From: Hemiscyllium ocellatum
Taxonomy: Eukaryota
DNA: 64,000 nt
Direction: 5' to 3'
Assembly: GCF_020745735.1 (NCBI RefSeq)
Contig: NC_083417.1
Span: 72,664,001 to 72,728,000 of the forward strand
Under the pieces are notes generated by a model. The model worked only from the letters and a program-made list of their open reading frames with translations. It was not told the DNA's origin and searched no databases. The first letter of the stretch is position 1, and every line of letters begins with the position of its first letter. The position numbers and the translations under genes are program-made. Positions 1 to 54,659 of this stretch are shown here, piece by piece.

Positions 1-252
1 GCACGCACACCTCCTGCCATTCGGACCTGCTTGGACACTATGTCACCCAAAACATACAGCAACGTTGCTGACTCTCAATAACTCTCCCAGTTGAACAAGG
101 AAACCACTCAGTTCAAGGATAATTGCGGTTGGACAAAAATGTTAACTTGCCATTGAAGAACATACAACATCAAATACATTGTTAATAAATCCTGTAATGT
201 GAACTTTTCCAAGCACACCTGAGAATTGCTTAACTTTCACTTTCATACATAC

Positions 253-804
253 CCAACACTGTTAAATTGGACCCTGTTCCGTTTCCAATCAATTTGCCTT
301 GACGGACGATTGTGCAATAGTACATTCCTCTGTCCTGTACATTGACATTGAATATCTGAAGGAAGCCACTGTATTTATTTTTGCGGCCAGTTACTTTTCG
401 TTCATCTTGTTCCACGTTGAGATAATGAGGATCACCTTGCTTCCACCAGATTACCTTGACAGCTTGGTCGATTTGAAAAGAATGAAGTCAGCACTGGAAG
501 GACACATTTGCACCCACAGGTTCAGTCACGTTCACTGGTAACTGGGTCACTTTATCCCTGATTACTCCAGACACTAGAGAAAGAGACAGTCACACACAAA
601 TTAGCAAGATTAAATAAAAGAGTTAAAAGAGTGCAGTTCAGAAATTGACTTAAACTGTCCAAAGGAGAACAGTACAGAATATATTAAATAAAGATTAAAT
701 AAGAGCTCGACTTTATGGAAAGGCAGTATACTGTAGAAAGAGAGAAAATACCTGGGAAAATTGCTGTCTGAAAAAAGACAGAAAAGTGCAATACTCAGGA
801 ACAT
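253..804 (-). pseudogene. Paralogue A of the V(J)-C1 receptor: leader (752-804) and V exon (253-573); the rest lies before the window start
   Basis: V exon is 321 nt like the intact gene: KVTQLP...VSFQC*LHSF...VIWWKQGD...DRGMYYC...GNGTGSNLTV. In-frame TGA directly after the first Cys; leader MFLSIALFCLF... is 53 nt (wrong phase). Confidence 0.88.
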
Positions 805-15480: not shown

Positions 15481-15776
15481 ATGTCTTAGCCATATGTTGC
15501 AGAAAAGGTATATATTTCTGATATTTTCAAGAAAGCGAAAATAAACAGAATCTTCTCCAGGTGAATTCTAATTTTCTGTGTAAAATCAAAGCATTTGCAC
15601 AGAAAATGTCAAATAAAATTTTGATTATTTTCTTGAAAAGAACACTTTTATAATTATAAAGAGCACTCTACATGGTCCTAGCAAGAAAAACGTAAAAGGT
15701 TGGGATTTCTTTCTCGGGAGATTAGGAGGTTGAAAGATGACCTGATAGAAGTTTATAAAATAATGAGGGGTACAGA

Positions 15777-15877
15777 AGCGCTCGGGTAAACGGGAGATGT
15801 GGAGCCGAAAACAGCAAGGGTCACGCTTGGATCTTTTCCAGGCTGCTGAGAGAGAATATTCAGTGGAGTCGGTGGAA
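15777..15877 (-). pseudogene. Relic 5-prime third of a C1 exon
   Basis: VPPTPLNILSQQPGKDPSVTLAVFGSTSPVYP vs VPPIPLKIISKSPENSVPGTLIVLCKTAAFYP; acceptor reads GG instead of AG; CR1-type sequence begins immediately after. Confidence 0.75.
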
Positions 15878-17948
15878 CCAGGGAAGTGAACAGGAAGAAA
15901 ATGAAATTACCTCGACATTAGAAGAGGATTACAGCCCAATCTTTTGTTTCGGGCGATTGCTGGGCAGTTACTGTCCAGTTGGGGGGGGGAAGGTGCTCAT
16001 GGTGGTGAGGGTTGGTGCGCGCTGTTGGTGCCGAGATACGAACATAGTACAGTATCAACGGGAATATTAACTCATCCCCGGACAAAGCGCGGGCAAGAAA
16101 ACGTGGACCGCTGTTGTTACAGACCTGTTTTTCTGTTGGAAATAACTGTCAAGAGACTCCTGAATTGGATTCATGATTTGCTATCGCTGATGGTGCAATA
16201 AGGCAGTTGTGGAAATGACATAACATAGGGGGAAAACAACTGATCCGTAACTGACGCGGAAGCCAACGGAGTCACTTACTTATTGCAAGGAGAAAGCATG
16301 TGAAATGTACAGGACGGTGGTTCCAGCAGTTTTTAGATTTTGAAATATCAGCATTCAAATTTTAATATTTATCTATTAAAACCACACCGACAAAAGAATG
16401 AGCCGTGAGTGTGGTCTTGGAAAAGCAGAGCAGGACAGGCAACATTCGAGGAGCAGCAGAATCCACATTTCAGGCAAAAAGCACTTTATCAGGAATGCTG
16501 CCTAACCTGCTGTGCTTTTCCAGTCTCCTGCCCCGCGGATGCTGCCTGACCTGCTGTGCTTTTCCAGCACCACACTCTTGACTCTAGCCTCCAGCATCTG
16601 CAATCCTCACTTTCGCCGAAAAAGATAAGCCCGTCAAGAAACGTCATCAATAAAAATAAACAGAAATTGTTGGAGAAACTCAACCGGTCTGGCAGGGTGG
16701 AGACTTGGGCACCAGGGAACCTTCTTCTCAAAGAAGATATAAAAAATAAATCATCAAATATAATCAAATCTGTGTCACCCGCGACGGGCTATTGCTTTTA
16801 ACCAATATCGTTGAAATGTCGGAGCAAATTACTCCAGATGCTGGAATCTGTGGACAAATGCTGGCGATCACAGCGGGTCAGGCAGCATCCACGAAGAGAG
16901 AGCAAGTTAACGTTTAGATGCCCCTTGATCAGGGCATGTATCTTTTCATCATCTTGCCAAAGTACTTGAGATTTCTGTTTATGTTCCACGGCTGTATAAT
17001 TCAGGTACAATTGCTAATACATCATTCTAAACATTCTAAACTGCTAATACATCATTGTAAGCTATTGAAATAATGAACGTAAAGTACAGTAGTCAGCGAT
17101 GCAATTTAATTGTGGGCATCTGTCAGGAACTGTGGCGATGTCACCAGGAGCGCACACACACCGCCTGCCATTCGGACCTGCTTGGACACTATGTCACTCA
17201 AAACATACAGCAATGTTGCTGCCTCTCAACATTTCTCCCAACTGACCAGGGAAATCTCTCAGTTCAAGGATAATTACAGTTGGACTAAAGTGTTAACTTG
17301 CCATTGAAGAACATACAACACCAAATACATTTTCAATAAACCCTGTAATGTGAACTTTTCCAAGCACACCCGAGAATAGCTTACGTTTGCTTTCATACAT
17401 ACCCCACACTGTTAAATTGGACCCTGTTCCGTTTCCAATCAATTTACCTTGATGGACGATTGTGCAATAAAACATTCCTCTGTCCTGTACACTGACATTG
17501 ATTAACTGAAGGAAGCCACTGAATTTAGTCCGGAGGCCAATTACTTTTCGTTCATCTTGTGTCAATAATGAGGATCATCTTGCTTCCACCAGGTTACCTT
17601 GACAGCTTGGCCGACTTGAAATAAGGAAAGCGAGAAATGGAAGGACACAGTTGCACCCACTGTTTCAGTCCACGTCCTCTGGTAACTGGGTCACTTTAAC
17701 TGAGATTGCCCCAGAACCTACAGAAAAAGGCATTCACAAATAAACTAGTAGGATTTAATAAAAGAGTTAAAAGAGTGGAGTTCAGTAATTGACTTAACCT
17801 GTCCAAAGGAGAATAGTACACAACATACTACATAAGATTAAATAACAGCTCGACTTTACGGAAAGGCAATATACTGTAGAAAGAGAGAGAATACCTGGGA
17901 AAATTGTGTCAGAATAAAGAGACAGAAAAGTGCAATACTCAGGAACAT
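15777..17948 (-). pseudogene. Paralogue B of the V(J)-C1 receptor: leader (17895-17948), V (17403-17717), truncated C1 (15777-15877)
   Basis: Leader 54 nt (wrong phase); V has a +1 insertion, a 7-nt deletion and first Cys changed to Phe, but keeps WWKQ, FYC and GNGTGSNLTV; C1 start VPPTPLNILS aligns with VPPIPLKIIS of the intact gene. Confidence 0.88.
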
Positions 17949-24899: not shown

Positions 24900-27140
24900 A
24901 ACTTCAATCTACAATTTGAGAGGGCGAGGATAGAGTCAGAAGTGACATTACTTCTGTTGAATAAAGGGAACTATGGAGCTATGAGGGAGGAGCTGTCCAA
25001 AGTTCAATGGTGCAATACCTTAGCAGGGATGACTGTGGAGGAACAATGGCGGATATTTCTGTGTATAATGCAGAAGTTGCAGGATTAGTTCATTCCTAAA
25101 AGGAAGAAAGATCCCAGGTTGAGGCATGGTCGGCCGTGGCTGACGCAGGAAGTTAAGAAACTTATAAAGTTAAAAGAGAAAAAGTATAACATAGCAAAGA
25201 TAAGTGGGAAAACTGAGGACTTGGAAGCTTTTAAAGAGCAACAGAGGATTACTAAGAAGGATATACGCAGAGGAAAAATGAGGTACGAAGGTAAACTGGC
25301 CAATAATATAAAGGAGGATAGTAAAAGCTTTTTTAAGTATGTGCAAGGCAAAAAAATGGTTAGGACTAAAATTGGGCCCTTGAAGACAGAAACAGGGGAA
25401 CAAAGAAATGGCAGAAGAATTAAACGGGTACTTCAGATCTGTGTTCACTGGGGAATACACAAGCAATCTCCCTGAGGTAACAGTGGCTGAAGGACCTGAA
25501 CTTAAGGGAATCTATATTTGCCAGGATTTGGTGTTGGAGAGACTGTTAGGCTTGAAGGTTGATAAGTCTCCGGGGCCTGATGGTCTACATCCCAGGGTAC
25601 TGAAGGAGGAGGCTCGGGAAATCGTGGATGCGTTGGTGATTATTTTCCAGAGTTCGATAGATTCAGAATCGGTTCCTGAGGATTGGAGGGTGGCTAATGT
25701 TATACCACTTTTTAAGAAAGGTGAGAGAGAGAAAGCAGGAAATTATAGACCAGTTAGTCTGACCTCAGTGGTGGAAAAGATGCTGGAGTCTATTATAAAG
25801 GATGAAATTACGGCACATCTGGATAGTAGTAACAGGATAGGACAGAGTCAGGATGGATTTATGAAGGGGAAATTATGCTTGACTATGCTTGAATTTTTTG
25901 AGGATGTAACTCTGAAGATGGACGAGGGAGATTCAGTAGATGTAGTGTACCTGGACCTTCAGAAAGCTTTTGATAAATTCCCACACAGGAGGTTAGTGAG
26001 TAAACGTACGGCGCATGGTATTGGAGGCAAAGTACTAGATTGGATTGAAAATTGGTTGGCTGATAGGAAACAAAGGGTAGTGATAAATGGCTCCATTTTG
26101 GATTTGCAGGCAGTGATCAGTGGGGTACTGCAGGGATCCGTGCTGGGACCGCAGCTTTTTACAATATATGTTAATGGTGTAGAAGATGGTATCAGCAATA
26201 ACATTAGCAAATTTGCTGATGATACAAAGCTGGGTGGCAGGGTGAAATGTGATGAGAATGTTAGGAGATTACAGGGTGACCTGGGCAAGTTAGGTGAGTG
26301 GCAGATGCATGGCAGATGCAGTTTAATGTGGATAAATGTATGGTTATCCATTTTGGTGGCAAGAACAGGAAGGCCGATTGCCACCTCAATAGAATCAATT
26401 TAGGTAAAGGGGCAGTACAGAGAGATCTGGGTGTTCTTGTACACCTGTCAATGAAGGCAAGCGTGCAGGTACAGCAGGTAGTGAAGAAGGCTAATAGCAT
26501 GCTGGCCTTCATAACAAGAGGAATTGAATATAGAAGTAAAGAGGTGTTTCTGCAGCTGTACAGGGCCCTGGTGAGACCACACCTGGAGTACTGTGTGCAG
26601 ATCTGGTCTCCAAATTTGAGGAAAGACATTCTGGCTATTGAGGGAGTGCAGCGTAGGTTCACGAGGTCAATTCCTGGAATGGCGGGATTACCTTATACTG
26701 AAAGACTGAAGCGACTGGACTTGTATACCCTTGAGTTTAGAAGACTGAGAGGGGATCTGATTGAGACATATAAGATTATGAAAGGATTGGACACTCTGGC
26801 AGCAGGAAACATGTTTCCGCTGGTGGGTGAGTGCTGAACCAGAGGACTCAGCTTAAAAATACGGGGTAGACCATTTAGGACAGAGATGAGGAGAAACTTC
26901 TTCACCCAGAGAGTGGTGGCTGTGTGGAATGCTCTGCCCCAGAGGGCAGTGGAAGCCTAGTCTCTGGATTCATTTAAGAAGGAGTTGGATAGAGCTCTCA
27001 AAGATGGTGGAATCAAGGGTTATGGAGATAAGGCAGGAAGAGGATACTAATTAGGAATGATCAGCCATGATCATATTGAATGGCGGTGCAGGCTCAAAGG
27101 GCTGAATGGCCTACTCCTGCACCTACTGTCTACTGTCTAT
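24900..27140 (+). mobile_element. CR1/HER1-type LINE, 5-prime truncated, frameshifted ORF2 (RT); copy-2-specific
   Basis: ORFs 25119-25475, 25408-26403 and 26298-26837 with NYRPVSLTS, YLDLQKAFDK, QGSVLGP, FADDTK; 3-prime (ACTGTCT)n-like tail. Confidence 0.95.
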
Positions 27141-47371: not shown

Positions 47372-48049
47372 AGGAAATTGCACTCACAACTTTATGGAAA
47401 TCAATACCAAATGAAAGCACATACAGTTACAGCAAGATTTGAAACAACAAAAGGTAAGTTTGATGTACATTGTTTAAATTGGTTTTAAATGTTTTATTAC
47501 TTCACATTGCTACATTCTTTTTTCTGACTGACGTTGACAAATGCATAAATCCATTTCTTTCACTGTTTTGTGTTGCTGCACTGTCATAGGTTCTCAACTT
47601 TTGTTTCCGCAGATCAACTTGTTCTGTTTTTCCACATGTGCATTATTACTTCCTGCACAGATTGTATAAGCAAAAATAATTAAAGCTCACAAGTTTTGGA
47701 TTTAATTATAAATCAGTCAATGTATAACAACTTTCAATGCTGTACTGATGAATATTACATATTGATGAAATTAGCTTCTCATTTTATGTTCGAAGTTGTG
47801 CAAACAAGGAAAGTAAAATAATTGCCCTTGGATTTCTGGCTTAATTATTTCAGGAAAGCACACAGAGAACACCAGGATTAATGAATTTCAATATGTAAAA
47901 GGAGACCCTTAATGCCTTTGGTAGCACTTACTTTTGGAACGACCAAGTCACTCAGTGCAAATCTACCACTATCTGCCAGTAACACCACATGGTCTTTTTT
48001 CACAACTTCTATTGTATTTAGCTGATTAGATCATTATGCAGATATTCTT

Positions 48050-49705
48050 TCTTTATCTGTCAGACGGATCAAAACAACATGTTGGAAGGTACAATGTTTG
48101 GAACCACCAAGGATCAGACGACGTTGAGGTATCAGGACAGGTAGATGAAGTGGTTAAGAAGGTATACGGGATACTTGTCAATATTAGCTATGCCATGGAG
48201 TTTAAGAACAGGGAAGCTGTGCTGAACGTATATTAAATAATGGTTTGGTCACAGCCAGAGTGTTATGAGCAGTTCTGGAATCCACATAATAGGAAAGATG
48301 AGCTAGCACTGGAGAAAGTGGAGAGGGACCGTATTATGATGCTGTAAGGTCTGGATAGTTTCAGCTATGAAGAGAAATTGGAAAGACTGTGATTGATTTC
48401 TTTCGAGCAGCATAGATTGAATGGGGAGATGTTAGTGATGGATAAAACTTCCCCTTGATGGAGTGGTCAATGACCATGTGGGCATAGATTTAACATAAAG
48501 GGCAGAATGTTTTTAGCAGATGTGAGGAGAATCTTTTTGCATATAAATAACACTTGAAGTGGTCAAATTTTCATGTCATCCTGCAAAGCCAACAGAAAAA
48601 AAATCAAATCTACCACTCTGATGAGGGCAGGGCAATATATGGAGTCTTGAAGGATCTCAGTAAGGCCTTTGATAAGGCTTCATATGGTCAGCTGCGACGG
48701 AAGATTGGATCACAGGGCAAGCTGACAAACTGAAAACAAAATTGGCCTGAGGGTAGGAAGCAGAGGGTGATAGTGGAAGGATGATTGTCGAACTAAAGGC
48801 CTGTGACTAGTGGAATGCATCAGGGTTGCTGCTGGGCCCACTACTGTTTGTGATCCCGATCAATGATTTGGATGAGAATGTACAAGGCATGATTGGAAAG
48901 TTTACTGATGACATGGTATCATGGTTACTGAGGAAAATTATCAGAAATTGCAGCAGGACCTTGATCAAATGGGGAAGTGGGGTTTAATCTACAAAGGTAT
49001 GAGGTCTTGCATTTTGGAGAGGCAAATCAAGATAGGAGTTTTATGGTGAATGGTAGGACTTAAGGAGTGTCGTGGGATGTTGAAGTTCAGATTCACAGTT
49101 CTCATGAAAGTGAAGTCAAGGGTAGTGAAGAATGCTTTTGGTACACTAGCTTTCATCAGTCAGGGCATTGGGTAAAGAGGTTGGGAAGTTATGTTGCAGT
49201 TTTACAGGATGTTGTTGAGGCTGAATTTGGAGTATTGTGTTCAGTTTTGGTCACCTTGTTATGGGAAGGATGTTATTAAACTGGAACAAGTGCAGAAGAA
49301 ATTTACAAGGATGTTGTCTGGACTCAATGGCCTGAGATATAGGGAGAGGTTGGACAAGCTCGAGCAGGAGACTGAGCGGGGACCTTAAAGAGATGAGAGG
49401 CATGTATAGGCTGAATACATTCAGTCTTTTTTTCCAGGGATGAAGAATCAAGGACTAGAGGGTGTCCATTTAAGATTACAGGGGAAACAATAAAAGGGAA
49501 TCTGAGGGGCAACCATTTTACACAGAGAGTGGTATGTTTATAGATTGAGCTGCCAGTGGAAGTGGTTGAAGTGGATACATTAACAACATTTAAAAGGCAT
49601 TTGGTCAAAAAATGGATAGGAAAGGCTTAGAAGGATATTGGCCAAATGCAGGGAAATGGGGTCAGTATGGACCAGTTTGGGCCAAAGAACTGTTATAGGA
49701 CTCTA
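48050..49705 (+). mobile_element. CR1-type LINE fragments directly downstream of the intact gene
   Basis: LEYCVQFWSPCYGKDVIKLE and RT remnants. Confidence 0.85.
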
Positions 49706-49727
49706 CGGTTCTATGATTCAACAAAAT

Positions 49728-49738
49728 CTACTGGCAAC
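49728..49738 (-). CDS. Candidate terminal coding exon (G-C-Q-stop)
   Basis: Strong polypyrimidine acceptor tacatttttttctctcag ~280 nt below the TM donor; phase-compatible, but alternatives exist (acceptor near 49787 giving EHLTLKYF*). Confidence 0.4.
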
Positions 49739-52700
49739 CTGAGAGAAAAAAATGTAAAGTCAGAAGTATTTCAGAGTAAGATGTTCTGGAGGCAAATGAA
49801 TGAAATGAATAAACCAGATTGGCTGCTGTAAAAATCTTGCATCTTTGCTCAGCATTGGATATGTTGAAATTTGCAAAACATCCATTTTAATTTACATTTT
49901 GCTAGATATTCTGCTCTGCATCCTCAATATCTCTGTCAATCCAATATTCACAGTATACCAAAGGTGGGTTAGTAAGTTTAGATGAAAAGCAGAAAATGAT
50001 GGTCTGTTAGCATTACCTTTCACTTTAAGATGTTTGACATAATCAGCAATGATAAGTGTCAGAGCGAGAATCATGAAGAAACCTAATATAAATTGAGGAA
50101 TCAAAGGAATGTTGAACCTGTGGACTAAAATATAGGATTTAGAGTAGTCATTGAATTATTATAGATAGCATGCCCAACTAAAATTCTATGAAACAAAAAA
50201 ATTCAATATTCAATAAACACTTGAAATAAATTGATCCATAATTTCAGAATCACTCCCTGAAAAGTGACAAGCATCATGAATATGAGCCTGGAGTCCATAG
50301 CTAAACAATTGTTCTGTAGATTGTACTCCTTACTTTAAACTGAAAAAAAACTTACAAAATCTAAGGCTGTTTCATAACATACAATTCTGCATGAACACAA
50401 CAAATTCTTGAAGGAAATTGATCTATTCTCAACTGAGCTAAGTGAAATATAATTGGAGAGCAAAGTGCAATAAATCATTAATTCAATCTCTTGCAAAAGA
50501 ACAACGTGCCATTGGGCAGCATTGTGGCTCAGTAATTAGCACTGCTACCTCATAGCGGCAGGGACGTGAGTTCAATGCCCATCTTGGGCAACTGTCTGTG
50601 TGGGCTTCCTCCCACAGAACAAAGATGTGCAGGTGAGGTGAATTGGCTACGCTAAATTGCACGTAGTGTTAGGTCGATTAGTTAGGGGGGTAGTGGAGGG
50701 TTAGTGTGGACTTGTTGGGCTGAAGGGTCTGTTTCCACATGGTAGGTAATCTAATCTTGTCCTGATTTGAAGTTTACCTCTTACATTGCTAATATGATAA
50801 ATCTCCAGATTAATTTGAACAACACAGTTGCAGAACAATTAATTTTATATGTGAAATATTTTGAAAGTGTCATAATCTACATAGAATTTGTGGAGTTAGC
50901 AGATCTTAAAGTCACCTGCACAATCAATTCATCCATGACAAAACAGTGTTCATGAAGGGATTTTAATAATTAATTGATTTCATCTGAATACATTAGATTG
51001 GAGATTTAAAAAATGTTTCTTTCTTTAGGGTAGAGGGCAATTAGTTCAGATAAAATGATTTTTTTAAAAAAAGCATCAAAATTTTATGTTAATTAACAAC
51101 AAGCAAAAAAGTAGGAGCATTATGTGCATTACCATGAATACAATAAAGTTGAAGGTAAAATTATAGTGAAATTATAGTTGTGGTATGTAAGGAGTATTTT
51201 TAATCATGGTATGATGACCATCCTTTTGCATTGGAGGGTAATAATCAAATGCCAACATTGAATTGTATTTTCAAGGTGTAAAGATACTTTTCAGAAATGC
51301 AAATACCAAAAAAGAGACTTGCCCATGGATTTTTGTATGTACGTAAAATGACAATAAATGTATAATTAAGAAAATACATGGTTATAATTGTTGCCAAAGA
51401 TGAATGGTTAAAGTAAATCTTCATAGTTAGAAGTAAGGAGAAAGTGAGGACTGCAGATGCTGCAGATCAGAGCTGAAAAATGTGTTGCTGCAAAAGCGCA
51501 ACAGGTCAGGCAGCATCCAAGGAGCAGGAGAATAGACGTTTCGGGCATGAGTCCTTCTTCAGGTTAGAAGTAAGCTAAAACATAGATTAAAAAGCATAAG
51601 TAAGCTACTATAGTAAGAAACCTCTCGCAAAATCTACAATTCAGAGAATTCGGGAGTATGTGAAAAAGGAAGTCTTGATTGAGAAGCAACTATAAATGTT
51701 TCCGTAAAGATGTTTTTAAAGTCATAGATCCATGGGCAGTTAGATAATGAATGATTTTCTGACTGTATTTTTGATGCAGACATACATGCTGCACTGGACC
51801 CCATAGTTTTCACTAGACATTCAGAAATTTCCAACGATAAAAAAAACCGAAAAATCATAATCTGTTGCGAGCTAGTTTCATCTTACACAATATTACCTAC
51901 ACCATTTGCTCCAAGCCTACCTTTCTTATGCAGATCGGAAATGTGTAATTGCAAGGATTTAAAAAATGTTGACATACGGTTGAATGTTTTAAAATGACGG
52001 GAAGCCATGGACAGCTTTGAAAGGAGGCGCTTGCCATTCAATAACGTTTGTTAGCACCCTGTAAAAATAAATCATAAATAAAGGCTCACCTTTCCGATTT
52101 GAGACAAAGAAGGTGCTGCGGACTGGAATCGGAAGCGTGCGGTGAGTGACCTGACAGGTAACATTGTGGGTTGCACGGGTGACTTCCATGCAGCTGGTAA
52201 GTTCATAAAGTCCTTTGGAATTCAAGTGCTTCAGAGCCATTATCCCGTTGGTAACATGAACGCCATCCTTGTACCAAGTTAGATTAATACTGTCTGGGTA
52301 AAAAGCAGCCGTTTTGCACAAGACAATCAAAGTTCCGGGAACACTGTTCTCAGGTGATTTGGAGATAATTTTCAATGGAATTGGAGGAACTGCAAAATAA
52401 AAACCGCAAAAGAAAATAACATCAGAAGCAGCCATCTGGCAATGTCCAGACGTTTTTTTTTCACAGTGAAACACTGTAAAGACTGGGCGCTGGTAATTCA
52501 GTTGCACAGGCGATGGCTCTCCCTGATAATCTGCATCGGGGTTGGCTTTAAATTAAGCGTAAATTTGGACAAAACCCCTCACAGAATAACTGAGAAAAAA
52601 TGACAAAGTCAGCGACCGTGCATCTCTTGAAAGCAATTGGGTTACCGCGGAAAATAACAGTCTCGAGTCTAAGCCACGAAATATTTACTTGCGTATTTAT

Positions 52701-54659
52701 ATATTAAATCAGATTTAGGAAACCAGGCACAATTAAGGGAAAAGGTAGCGGAGGGCGGAAATGCAAATAACACGATTTGCATTGTTTTATGATTTTTGAT
52801 AAAATAAGAATAATGAAGTACTGAAGGAATGGGCTCCAATGTTATGTTTTTCTGTGTACCAGAAGGTGTCTGGTAAAACGGCTCTCAGAGCTGCCTCACA
52901 CAGAGGCCCGGGTTGCATTCCAGCCATGTGTGTCTACGTGGAGTTTGCACGTTCTCCACACATGGGGTCCCCCCAGATGCACGATTTTCCACCTCAGCCC
53001 AAAGACGTGCAGATTCGGCGGATTGGCCAAGTATTGCCCCATAGTGTCCCGTGACCTGCAGGATGGTTGGACTAGCCATGGTAAAAACGTAAGGGTAGGG
53101 ATGGGTCTTTGTTGGAACGCTCATTGGAAGGTGGGTACAAACGCGATGGGCTGAATGGCCTGCACTGTAGGTATTCCATGATTCTGAAAGTCATCACAAA
53201 GCAGACAACATCCTTACATTGGAATATCAAATCCTGATTATAGTTGAGCGAGTTTAGTGGGCAACTTTGAGGTTACTACAACAACAAACAAATACCGCCC
53301 CCCGAATTATTTAAAGGTCAAGTGTCTCGATGAGGGATGTGAATTGCGAGATCGAATCCTTGATTCCTCATTTCATCTCCGTGTGCCGATTTTATAAATC
53401 ATTCTCCAATATCCAAAACCTGGTGTTACCGTGCATCATAATCATCATCTGCACAGCGAAACCCAACTCGAAGTGGTAAAGATTAATAGGAGCCTTCTAG
53501 ATTGATAAAGGGAGACACAAATTAATGTTTTACTTCAATACACTGGGAATACCATTTCCAAAGGTTGGTGAGTAATATTCGATTTTCACCGGACGCATTA
53601 CTGTAGTATGTTTGGTTCAGGAATAATATATTATACTTAATTAGATATTTCTTCACATTCGAATCTCAGTTTGATAGAGCTTTTTATGAAGCATTAAATT
53701 TCTGTGAATTCACATCTATCCCTCAGCAAGGTCTTGAGCGATAGTGGAAAAAGGGATGAAAACAGTCGCTCATTGTCCAACATTTCTCGTGGTACATTCG
53801 TGTTCTTGAGTAGAAATATATATCAGAAGGACACTTTCATTTTGTGAGAACAGTGTCTACAATTTAAGGTAATAGCAGGGTTTATCGCAACCGCTTCATC
53901 AATTGGGAAATGAAAGGGGTTACAATTCAGTTCTCGGTCAGTCAAAACGGTGTTTAATTTAAGAGATTATGTCAGACGAATCTCCTGTTACACGTTTTTT
54001 GCGTGTCCTTTCTGTTATTCAGTGCATCATTTTCAATGACAGTGGATTTATTCAATATAGTTCAGACCGGAAAGCAGACGTCAATGTTCATGGATCATCC
54101 CATTTAAAATAAACGCTTAGTATTGTGCGCTGTTGATATCACGTGAAATAATTTGCTACACATTGCACTTACCATAGATAACAAGCCTTGACCCAGTTCC
54201 ATTTACAATGGGGCTATCCGGATGTTTTACTCCACAGTAATAGACTCCAGAGTCATCGGCCTTGACGTTTAAGAGTTGCAGAGAGGCTTCACCTTTCTTC
54301 AACGGAAGAAATCGTTTCCTGCCGTCAGATCCTGACTGCAGAAGTTCGGTATCGCCGAGTTTCCACCAACTGATAGTCACATTGGATTGATCGCGAAAAA
54401 GAGGGAATGCGCAGTAAAAGGTAAAGCTTTCACCTTCGACAGCGTATGTACTTTCGGGGGTTTGAGACACTTTCATCTGACAATTTGCGACAGCTGTTTG
54501 GAACAAAATGGAAACGCCAAATCGATATATAACATAGCACCAAAGGCAAGTTGAAATGAGAAAGGACAAATCTCGAGCAGGATAGAATGAGAAATGTATA
54601 CCTGCAGAAATAATGACAAAAATATTTACAATTGGAGACAACACAATGCCGGATACCAT
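49728..54659 (-). CDS. Non-rearranging antigen-receptor-like type I membrane protein, leader-V(J-joined)-C1-TM-short tail (5 exons, about 265 aa); NKp30/PRARP/SIRP/B7H6-like architecture, orthology unresolved
   Basis: Exons 54602-54659, 54173-54493, 52090-52389 and 50017-50124 (plus candidate 49728-49738) have GT-AG ends, are all joined in phase 1, and splice into one stop-free frame: MVSGIVLSPIVNIFVIISAAVANCQMKVSQTPE...YYCGVKHPDSPIVNGTGSRLVIYVPPIPLKII...CQVTHRTLPIPVRSTFFVSNRKVHRFNIPLIPQFILGFFMILALTLIIADYVKHLKVK(GCQ*). Confidence 0.85.
50017..50124 (-). CDS. Exon 4, stalk/transmembrane/juxtamembrane (VHRFNIPLIPQFILGFFMILALTLIIADYVKHLKVK)
   Basis: 108 nt phase 1-1, acceptor cctatattttag, donor AAAG|GTAATG, long hydrophobic run followed by basic residues. 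Confidence 0.8.
50513..50757 (+). mobile_element. HE1-type SINE in intron 3 of the intact gene
   Basis: gggcagcattgtggctcagtaattagcactgctacc... head. Confidence 0.8.
52090..52389 (-). CDS. Exon 3, C1-set Ig domain
   Basis: 300 nt, acceptor ttttattttgcag, donor AAAG|GTGAGC; C1 hallmarks LIVLCKTAAFYP, LTWYKDG, NSKGLYELTS, CQVTH. Confidence 0.95.
52870..53185 (+). mobile_element. tRNA-derived SINE in intron 2 of the intact gene
   Basis: gctgcctcacacag...cccgggttgcattcc...gtggagtttgcacgttctcc. Confidence 0.75.
54173..54493 (-). CDS. Exon 2, V-set Ig domain with germline-joined J-like G strand
   Basis: 321 nt, acceptor ttttgttccaaacag, donor TATG|GTAAGT; B-strand Cys (FTFYC), WWK, DSGVYYC, NGTGSRLVI (GxG...LxV/I). 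Confidence 0.95.
54602..54659 (-). CDS. Exon 1, signal peptide MVSGIVLSPIVNIFVIISA
   Basis: ATG at 54659, 19 hydrophobic codons plus 1 nt, donor GCAG|GTATAC; phase 1 matches the V exon. Confidence 0.82.

Follow-up and report, generated by a model that had tools for sequence, protein, structure and literature searches.

An intact, non-rearranging VJ-C1 gene of the epaulette shark is a conserved member of a large chondrichthyan receptor family

The 64,000-nucleotide stretch of epaulette shark DNA analysed here (Hemiscyllium ocellatum, contig NC_083417.1, positions 72,664,001 to 72,728,000; hereafter the window, with positions counted from its first letter) carries on its minus strand an intact gene of five coding exons, recovered by reading the sequence and by scripted exon assembly, whose product joins a V-set domain with a built-in J-like strand to a C1-set domain and a transmembrane (TM) helix. 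Our results identify it as a real, intact and ordinary member of a large chondrichthyan VJ-C1 family, among the non-rearranging VJ-C1 receptors of the immunoglobulin superfamily (IgSF). All of the exon junctions are in phase 1 and have canonical splice sites (Table 1), and the leader is split, its last few residues being encoded by the V exon and the remainder by exon 1. The spliced product of 281 residues is letter for letter the RefSeq protein XP_060693848.1 of H. ocellatum, automatically named "immunoglobulin lambda-1 light chain-like," and the 7066-nt span of the coding sequence is the annotated gene span in GCA_020745735.1, on an 85.0-Mb chromosome. Hence, the gene is an existing RefSeq model and not an undiscovered one, and its public names are misleading.

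Table 1. Exons of the VJ-C1 gene and other features of the window (a slash in a donor marks the exon/intron boundary)
Feature	Position	Strand	Boundaries and content
Exon 1 (leader)	54602-54659	-	ATG at 54659; donor G/GTATAC; most of signal peptide MVSGIVLSPIVNIFVIISA + 1 nt; product identical to P0184
Exon 2 (V-set)	54173-54493	-	321 nt; acceptor aaacag; donor GTAAGT; Pfam V-set 3.1e-11
Exon 3 (C1-set)	52090-52389	-	300 nt; acceptor ttttgcag; donor GTGAGC; LCKTAAFYPDSINLTWYKDG ... VTCQVTHRTLPIPV; Pfam C1-set 2.9e-12
Exon 4 (connecting peptide and TM helix)	50017-50124	-	acceptor tattttag; donor AAA G/GTAAT; VHRFNIPLIPQFILGFFMILALTLIIADYVKHLKVK + G
Exon 5 (end of cytoplasmic tail)	47594-47652	-	acceptor ctgtgcag; final 19 residues GSNNAHVEKQNKLICGNKS; TGA stop
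AATAAA, putative polyadenylation signal	47493-47498	-	~95 nt past stop codon; read directly in the sequence
Conserved alternative cassette exon, V-C1 intron	53431-53496	-	acceptor ..tctag; donor GTAAC
Dead V exon	194-598	-	ends GKLIGNGTGSNLTVLG + GT donor; one in-frame stop right after first canonical Cys (..SFQC*LHSF..)
Dead V exon	17254-17745	-	frameshifts and stops
Degenerate C1 start	15693-15878	-	VPPTPLNILSQQPG..; ~1.4 kb downstream of V exon 17254-17745
Reverse-transcriptase open reading frame	25408-26403	+	331 aa; RVT_1 4e-24; retroelement between family copies

A preliminary description of this locus had proposed a gene of four phase-1 exons at 49728-54659. Its leader, V and C1 exons and the start of its TM exon stood, but it had missed the fifth exon and misplaced the 3' end, and the extent becomes approximately 47490-54659 with exon 5 and the AATAAA included. 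Specifically, a 70-residue read-through tail (50104-49892, with a stop at 49892) gave way to a reading with the GTAAT donor at 50016 plus a fifth exon, which we looked for because the orthologue of Chiloscyllium plagiosum (P0001; retrieved proteins are designated herein by such numbers) ends differently from the four-exon reading, and which is required for the exact match to XP_060693848.1. The first Gly codon of GSNNAHVEKQNKLICGNKS straddles the junction of exons 4 and 5, and the AATAAA beyond the stop presumably serves as the polyadenylation signal. The cassette exon in the V-C1 intron shows 95% identity, in tblastn, to residues 11-32 of C. plagiosum isoform X4 (P0182). Because its inclusion in the main reading frame adds a stop, after four codons, it may act as a poison exon or be the source of a V-only product. 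Further, a soluble form may exist, given C. plagiosum isoforms from which the TM exon is absent (P0183).

The domain content leaves the product with one V and one C1 domain only, in the V-set then C1-set order of immunoglobulin (Ig) light chains and T-cell receptor (TCR) chains. Pfam recognised a V-set domain (3e-11) in exon 2 and a C1-set domain (2.9e-12) in exon 3 when the exons were searched singly, and the full protein agrees. The V exon holds Cys47, Cys106 and a YYC motif and ends in a germline-joined J-like G strand, VNGTGSRLVIY, before terminating directly at its donor. Thus, the exon assembly confirmed the strand NGTGSRLVI that the preliminary description had placed inside the V exon, and the second domain proved to be the true C1-set domain claimed there, with its FYP, WYKDG and CQVTH motifs. 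The same description had seen no recombination signal sequence (RSS) by the V exon, and we extended this to the whole window, which contains no heptamer-spacer-nonamer arrangement; the sole CACAGTG in the gene (at 52462) is intronic and on the opposite strand. A rearranging antigen receptor of the Ig light-chain or TCR kind is excluded by the J-like strand in the V exon together with the lack of any RSS in the window. Hence, while the gene resembles those of Ig light and TCR chains in its V-J-C1 order, split leader and phase-1 exons, it differs from them in that V and J are fused in the germline with no RSS, in having a TM exon of its own, and in belonging to a family with ITIM (immunoreceptor tyrosine-based inhibitory motif) or short tails. 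Two cysteines also vary among the orthologues. Residue 24 of the H. ocellatum protein is Cys (AVANCQMKV; 54588-54590 region, minus strand) and is Gly in all other orthologues; this Cys24 would be unpaired and would lie at or adjoining the signal-peptide cleavage site. The other, Cys193 of the C1 domain, varies between species.

Structure prediction, which the preliminary description had proposed as a check, gave two beta-sandwich domains and a long helix over residues 234-276, the TM segment, in a full AlphaFold2 (AF2) model built from a 38-sequence family alignment (mean predicted local distance difference test score, pLDDT, 86). Searched against the PDB, the whole model had antibody light chains, mostly kappa, as its top 50 matches (E ~2e-17; 21-27% identity), and against the Swiss-Prot models, it matched butyrophilins, Ig lambda and kappa, CD276, PD-L1, TCR-beta, B7H6 and SIRP-alpha/beta. 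The tightest superposition was on D1-D2 of rat SIRP-alpha, at 3.8 A over 218 residues and 24% identity. A model of the V domain on its own (pLDDT 87.7) instead placed NKp30 first in both libraries (Swiss-Prot/AFDB and PDB) at 23-25% identity, with macaque, human and rat NCR3 at E 1.3e-8 to 4e-8 in Swiss-Prot and 3noi at 9.8e-9 in the PDB. For the C1 domain, we relied on per-domain alignment scores, as the PDB sequence searches were dominated by multi-domain chains. With the family profile, the best single domain among the alignments listed was Ig lambda C (49.1 bits), followed by the C1 domain of UrIg2 (42.5 bits), and with the single sequence, a Fab light-chain constant domain (29.9 bits) stood ahead of UrIg2 C1 (24.6 bits). 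These models and scores place the V domain near NKp30 or the antigen receptors and the C1 domain near light chains, with the similarities all at the 23-27% level.

The relatives of this protein make up a large family. When a profile built from five orthologues was run against a set of 1.84 billion representatives with clusters at 50% identity, it matched 1836 proteins at E<=0.001, 517 at E<=1e-10 and 88 clusters at E<=1e-30, so that the family comprises at least 88 clusters. In approximately 100 of the retrieved proteins, a single V domain is combined with a single C1 domain, both of this type. The 50-odd matches whose names were looked up are all chondrichthyan and span sharks (Chiloscyllium, Hemiscyllium, Carcharodon, Cetorhinus, Mustelus, Scyliorhinus, Heterodontus and Heptranchias), rays and skates (Mobula, Hemitrygon, Hypanus, Leucoraja and Amblyraja) and a chimaera (Callorhinchus); no bony-vertebrate protein appeared among the named strong matches, and a further family-profile search likewise returned only chondrichthyan proteins. 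The automatic names of these proteins conflict, ranging over SIRP-alpha-like, SIRP-beta-like, tapasin-related-like, Ig lambda-like, NCR3LG1-like, CD276 homolog and MHC class II beta-like, and the members of one species often lie on one chromosome. Their tails are of two kinds, either long with at least one ITIM-like motif (LTYAAL, VxYxxL) or short, a combination that, judged from the motifs, marks a family of paired inhibitory and activating receptors. All of the family hallmarks are present in the epaulette shark gene, namely the NGTGSxLxV strand, one C1 domain with a VPPxP start and the FYP..W..CxVxH motifs, a TM segment and one of the two tail kinds. These profile searches bear out the earlier suggestion of a cartilaginous-fish, non-rearranging VJ-C1 member of a lineage-expanded family, one that goes under various names. 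Our literature search found no paper on a chondrichthyan VJ-C1 family, which published shark studies of NCR3, B7H6/NKp30 or UrIg might already cover.

Within this family, the gene has counterparts that can be followed across shark orders. In a maximum-likelihood tree of the V and C1 domains of 46 named family members, the window protein falls in a clade of eight (100/99) with the topology (Hemiscyllium, C. plagiosum, C. punctatum), ((Carcharodon, Cetorhinus), (Mustelus, (Scyliorhinus canicula, S. torazame))). Because this topology matches the species tree, the eight are 1:1 orthologues from the Orectolobiformes, Lamniformes and Carcharhiniformes. Identity between the orders is 58-69% for V and 59-64% for C1, and because the V domain is at least as conserved as the C1 domain, a conserved ligand would be expected rather than rapid diversification. 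All eight galeomorph orthologues have a short tail, and all eight share a TM cassette, ..(P/H)(R/Q)F(I/V)L(G/A/S)F...II(A/V)(D/E/V)(Y/H), in which an Arg stands in the outer third of the helix in five (Carcharodon, Cetorhinus, Mustelus and the two Scyliorhinus species). In the three hemiscylliid orthologues, Gln replaces this Arg (in H. ocellatum, codon CAA at ~50090, minus strand, within IPQFILGF), so the basic TM residue of an adaptor-coupled activating receptor is present in the Arg-bearing orthologues and absent from the H. ocellatum copy. The Arg...Asp-His cassette recurs in other clades of the family (P0009, P0025, P0028, P0049 and Mobula P0200). Heterodontus P0009 has the Arg cassette, yet its ectodomain groups with those of the ITIM-tailed P0007 and P0012; because ectodomain and TM type thus do not always track each other, the mismatch suggests exon exchange between paired forms.

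We read the gene as a conserved, non-rearranging, short-tailed and probably activating-type member of a chondrichthyan paired-receptor family, and we assign this reading, together with the mechanism that follows, a probability of approximately 0.72. The product is a type I membrane protein in which a signal peptide, an NKp30-like V domain and an Ig-light-chain-like C1 domain are followed by a short stalk, a TM helix and a motif-free tail of approximately 25 residues. Its paralogues carry a near-identical kind of ectodomain on ITIM tails, the gene under study being the short-tailed member. The V domain would bind a conserved ligand, and the ancestral form, by analogy with the short-tailed partners of other paired families, would signal via an ITAM (immunoreceptor tyrosine-based activation motif) adaptor recruited by the TM Arg. 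The recurrent cassette, with its outer-third Arg and an Asp/Glu-His at the inner end of the helix, would take part in this coupling. Because Gln has replaced the TM Arg, adaptor coupling may be weak or lost in the epaulette shark, a change that would be specific to the hemiscylliid lineage, and an uncoupled protein could serve there as a decoy, a co-receptor or a ligand-like partner. The protein would work most like a paired innate receptor of the SIRP or NKp30 type.

Several observations weigh against this reading. The runners-up in the fold search of the V domain (CD79b, Ig kappa V, shark VNAR and TCR V-alpha) follow NKp30 by less than 10-fold in E. The members of the tree are all chondrichthyan, so that placement relative to SIRP, B7H6, NKp30 and PRARP rests on fold and profile rankings. 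The adaptor argument cannot be carried over directly to the H. ocellatum copy, where the TM Arg is missing, and no recognisable motif was found in its cytoplasmic tail, KHLKVKGSNNAHVEKQNKLICGNKS. Finally, the RefSeq isoforms in Chiloscyllium only suggest RNA support, and the H. ocellatum gene is known here from sequence alone, from which its expression appears probable.

The alternatives differ in which known system they would attach the gene to. The preliminary description had held that firm grouping of both domains with a known orthologue, such as B7H6 or SIRP, would make the gene a member of a known family; by fold and profile rankings, as distinct from rigorous outgroup trees, V and C1 do not group in this way. 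Under one alternative, the gene would be the shark counterpart of B7H6 (NCR3LG1), that is, a V-C1 ligand on target cells recognised by NKp30-like receptors and not a receptor. In RefSeq, the orthologues of Carcharodon, Mustelus and C. punctatum are called NCR3LG1-like, the V-C1-TM layout is common to both, B7H6 is among the whole-model fold matches (E 9.5e-15), and a short, motif-free tail with no TM Arg in H. ocellatum would suit a ligand. We nevertheless consider this quite unlikely, given that identity is 17-18% to B7H6 versus 23-27% to Ig light chains and SIRP, that the best V fold match is NKp30 itself and not a B7-family V domain, that human B7H6 lies outside the top 60 PDB sequence matches for either domain, and that ITIM-tailed and Arg-TM paralogues surround the clade in the tree, as expected of receptors. 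More broadly, B7H6, PD-L1, CD276 and the butyrophilins (BTN) match the whole model at 14-20% identity, whereas Ig light chains, SIRP and NKp30 score equally well or better (23-27%), and although B7H6 and the butyrophilins have a similar V-C1-TM layout, the shark V domain has its J-like GxG strand and is closer to the V domains of NKp30 and antigen receptors than to those of B7 proteins. It is also unlikely that the gene is a true SIRP orthologue or co-orthologue, a chondrichthyan SIRP-beta or SIRP-gamma minus one C1 domain. Many family members have been auto-named SIRP-alpha-like or SIRP-beta-like; SIRP, too, combines a V domain with a J-like strand and a C1 domain and pairs ITIM-tailed with short-tailed forms; and D1-D2 of SIRP-alpha and SIRP-beta provide the best rigid-body fit of the two-domain model, these fold matches standing at 22-24% identity (the searches themselves yielded chondrichthyan proteins only). 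However, SIRP has two C1 domains and a TM Lys for DAP12, whereas the shark protein has no TM Lys and, like approximately 100 family members, a single C1 domain. Further, SIRP V domains are outside the top 30 Swiss-Prot and top 50 PDB fold matches of the V domain, which NKp30 leads, and the named strong matches include no bony-vertebrate proteins.

A different possibility is that the gene is not an innate paired receptor at all but the surviving relic of an antigen-receptor gene that preceded the recombination-activating genes (a pre-RAG gene), like UrIg and UrIg2. It has the single-exon VJ, the split leader and the C1 domain that such a relic would have; for that C1 domain, the highest scores go to Ig lambda C and UrIg2 C1, and light chains are the best PDB matches of the whole ectodomain. 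We regard this origin as very improbable, however. The family to which the gene belongs is large, has expanded in tandem and includes ITIM as well as activating tails, and the similarity of the gene product to antigen-receptor domains (23-27%) is no higher than its similarity to SIRP. The preliminary description had raised kinship with the pre-RAG receptor; the VJ-C1 build does fit, but the support is no better than for any other VJ-C1 IgSF gene. Location speaks in the same direction: the white-shark orthologue (P0002) maps to a contig of 193.5 Mb, whereas chromosome 19 of that species, which carries the major histocompatibility complex (MHC) with five NCR3 genes at 101.9-102.3 Mb beside AIF1 and also UrIg, ends near 116 Mb (the last listed gene ends at 115.6 Mb). 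Because the contig exceeds the chromosome in length, the orthologue is not on the MHC chromosome, so the MHC linkage proposed as a check was not seen, while the homology searches of V and C1 proposed alongside it gave strong named matches in chondrichthyans only. In UrIg and UrIg2, the number of C domains ranges from three to eleven, and the genes show linkage to the MHC or the antigen-receptor complex (AgRC) (PMC12227049). They resemble the present gene in being elasmobranch and in having a single-exon VJ and C1-type domains, the C1 domain of UrIg2 being the second-best PDB match; identity with either is rejected on the single C1 exon and the different locus, as opposed to three or more C domains and a defined MHC or AgRC linkage. 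Separately, a white-shark protein of 1105 aa with many C1-set domains (P0014), matched by the family profile at 1e-60, is encoded on a different, 20.4-Mb contig, where a V-C1 gene adjoins it; this protein is a candidate for UrIg2 or for another multi-C1 gene related to it. PRARP and the tetrapod VJ-C1 genes are, broadly speaking, likewise non-rearranging VJ-C1 genes of the IgSF, according to the passages of PMC10751288 that cite Fu et al. 2019 and Ohta et al. 2019. As for NKp30, it shares the VJ-type V exon and the top V fold but is built as V-stalk-TM without a C domain, so that identity by architecture is ruled out by the C1 exon between the V and TM exons. Judged from the white-shark orthologue, the gene also does not occupy the NKp30-type position (MHC class III, by AIF1). 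NKp30 has an Arg near the outer end of its TM segment, as do most orthologues of the shark gene. One could speculate, at long odds, that the chondrichthyan VJ-C1 family is the retained two-domain form of the NKp30 lineage and that NKp30 descends from a V(J)-C1 receptor by loss of the C1 domain; if true, the family would directly bridge NKp30-type innate receptors and the V-C1 ancestor of antigen receptors, and the conserved orthologue clade would be its slow-evolving core member.

Elsewhere in the window, remnants of family copies and mobile DNA surround the gene (Table 1). The V exon nearest the window start has 57% identity to its closest relative, the catshark subfamily of P0019, and the remainder of its gene would fall beyond the window start. 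The second dead V exon, together with the degenerate C1 start, looks like a dead V-C1 gene copy, and both dead V exons are closest to a subfamily other than that of the intact gene, represented by P0019 and P0191 of S. canicula. Matches to the N-terminal part of P0009, a gene model, also occur at several other places in the window and suggest that a repeat has been fused into that model.

The inconsistent RefSeq names of the family are unfit for comparative inference. Models of how antibodies and T-cell receptors originated draw on non-rearranging VJ-C1 genes as their raw material, and our results indicate that the cartilaginous fishes retain a large, tandemly expanded paired-receptor family that combines an NKp30-like V domain with a light-chain-like C1 domain. 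Within this fast-evolving family, at least one short-tailed member has been kept as a 1:1 orthologue across three shark orders.

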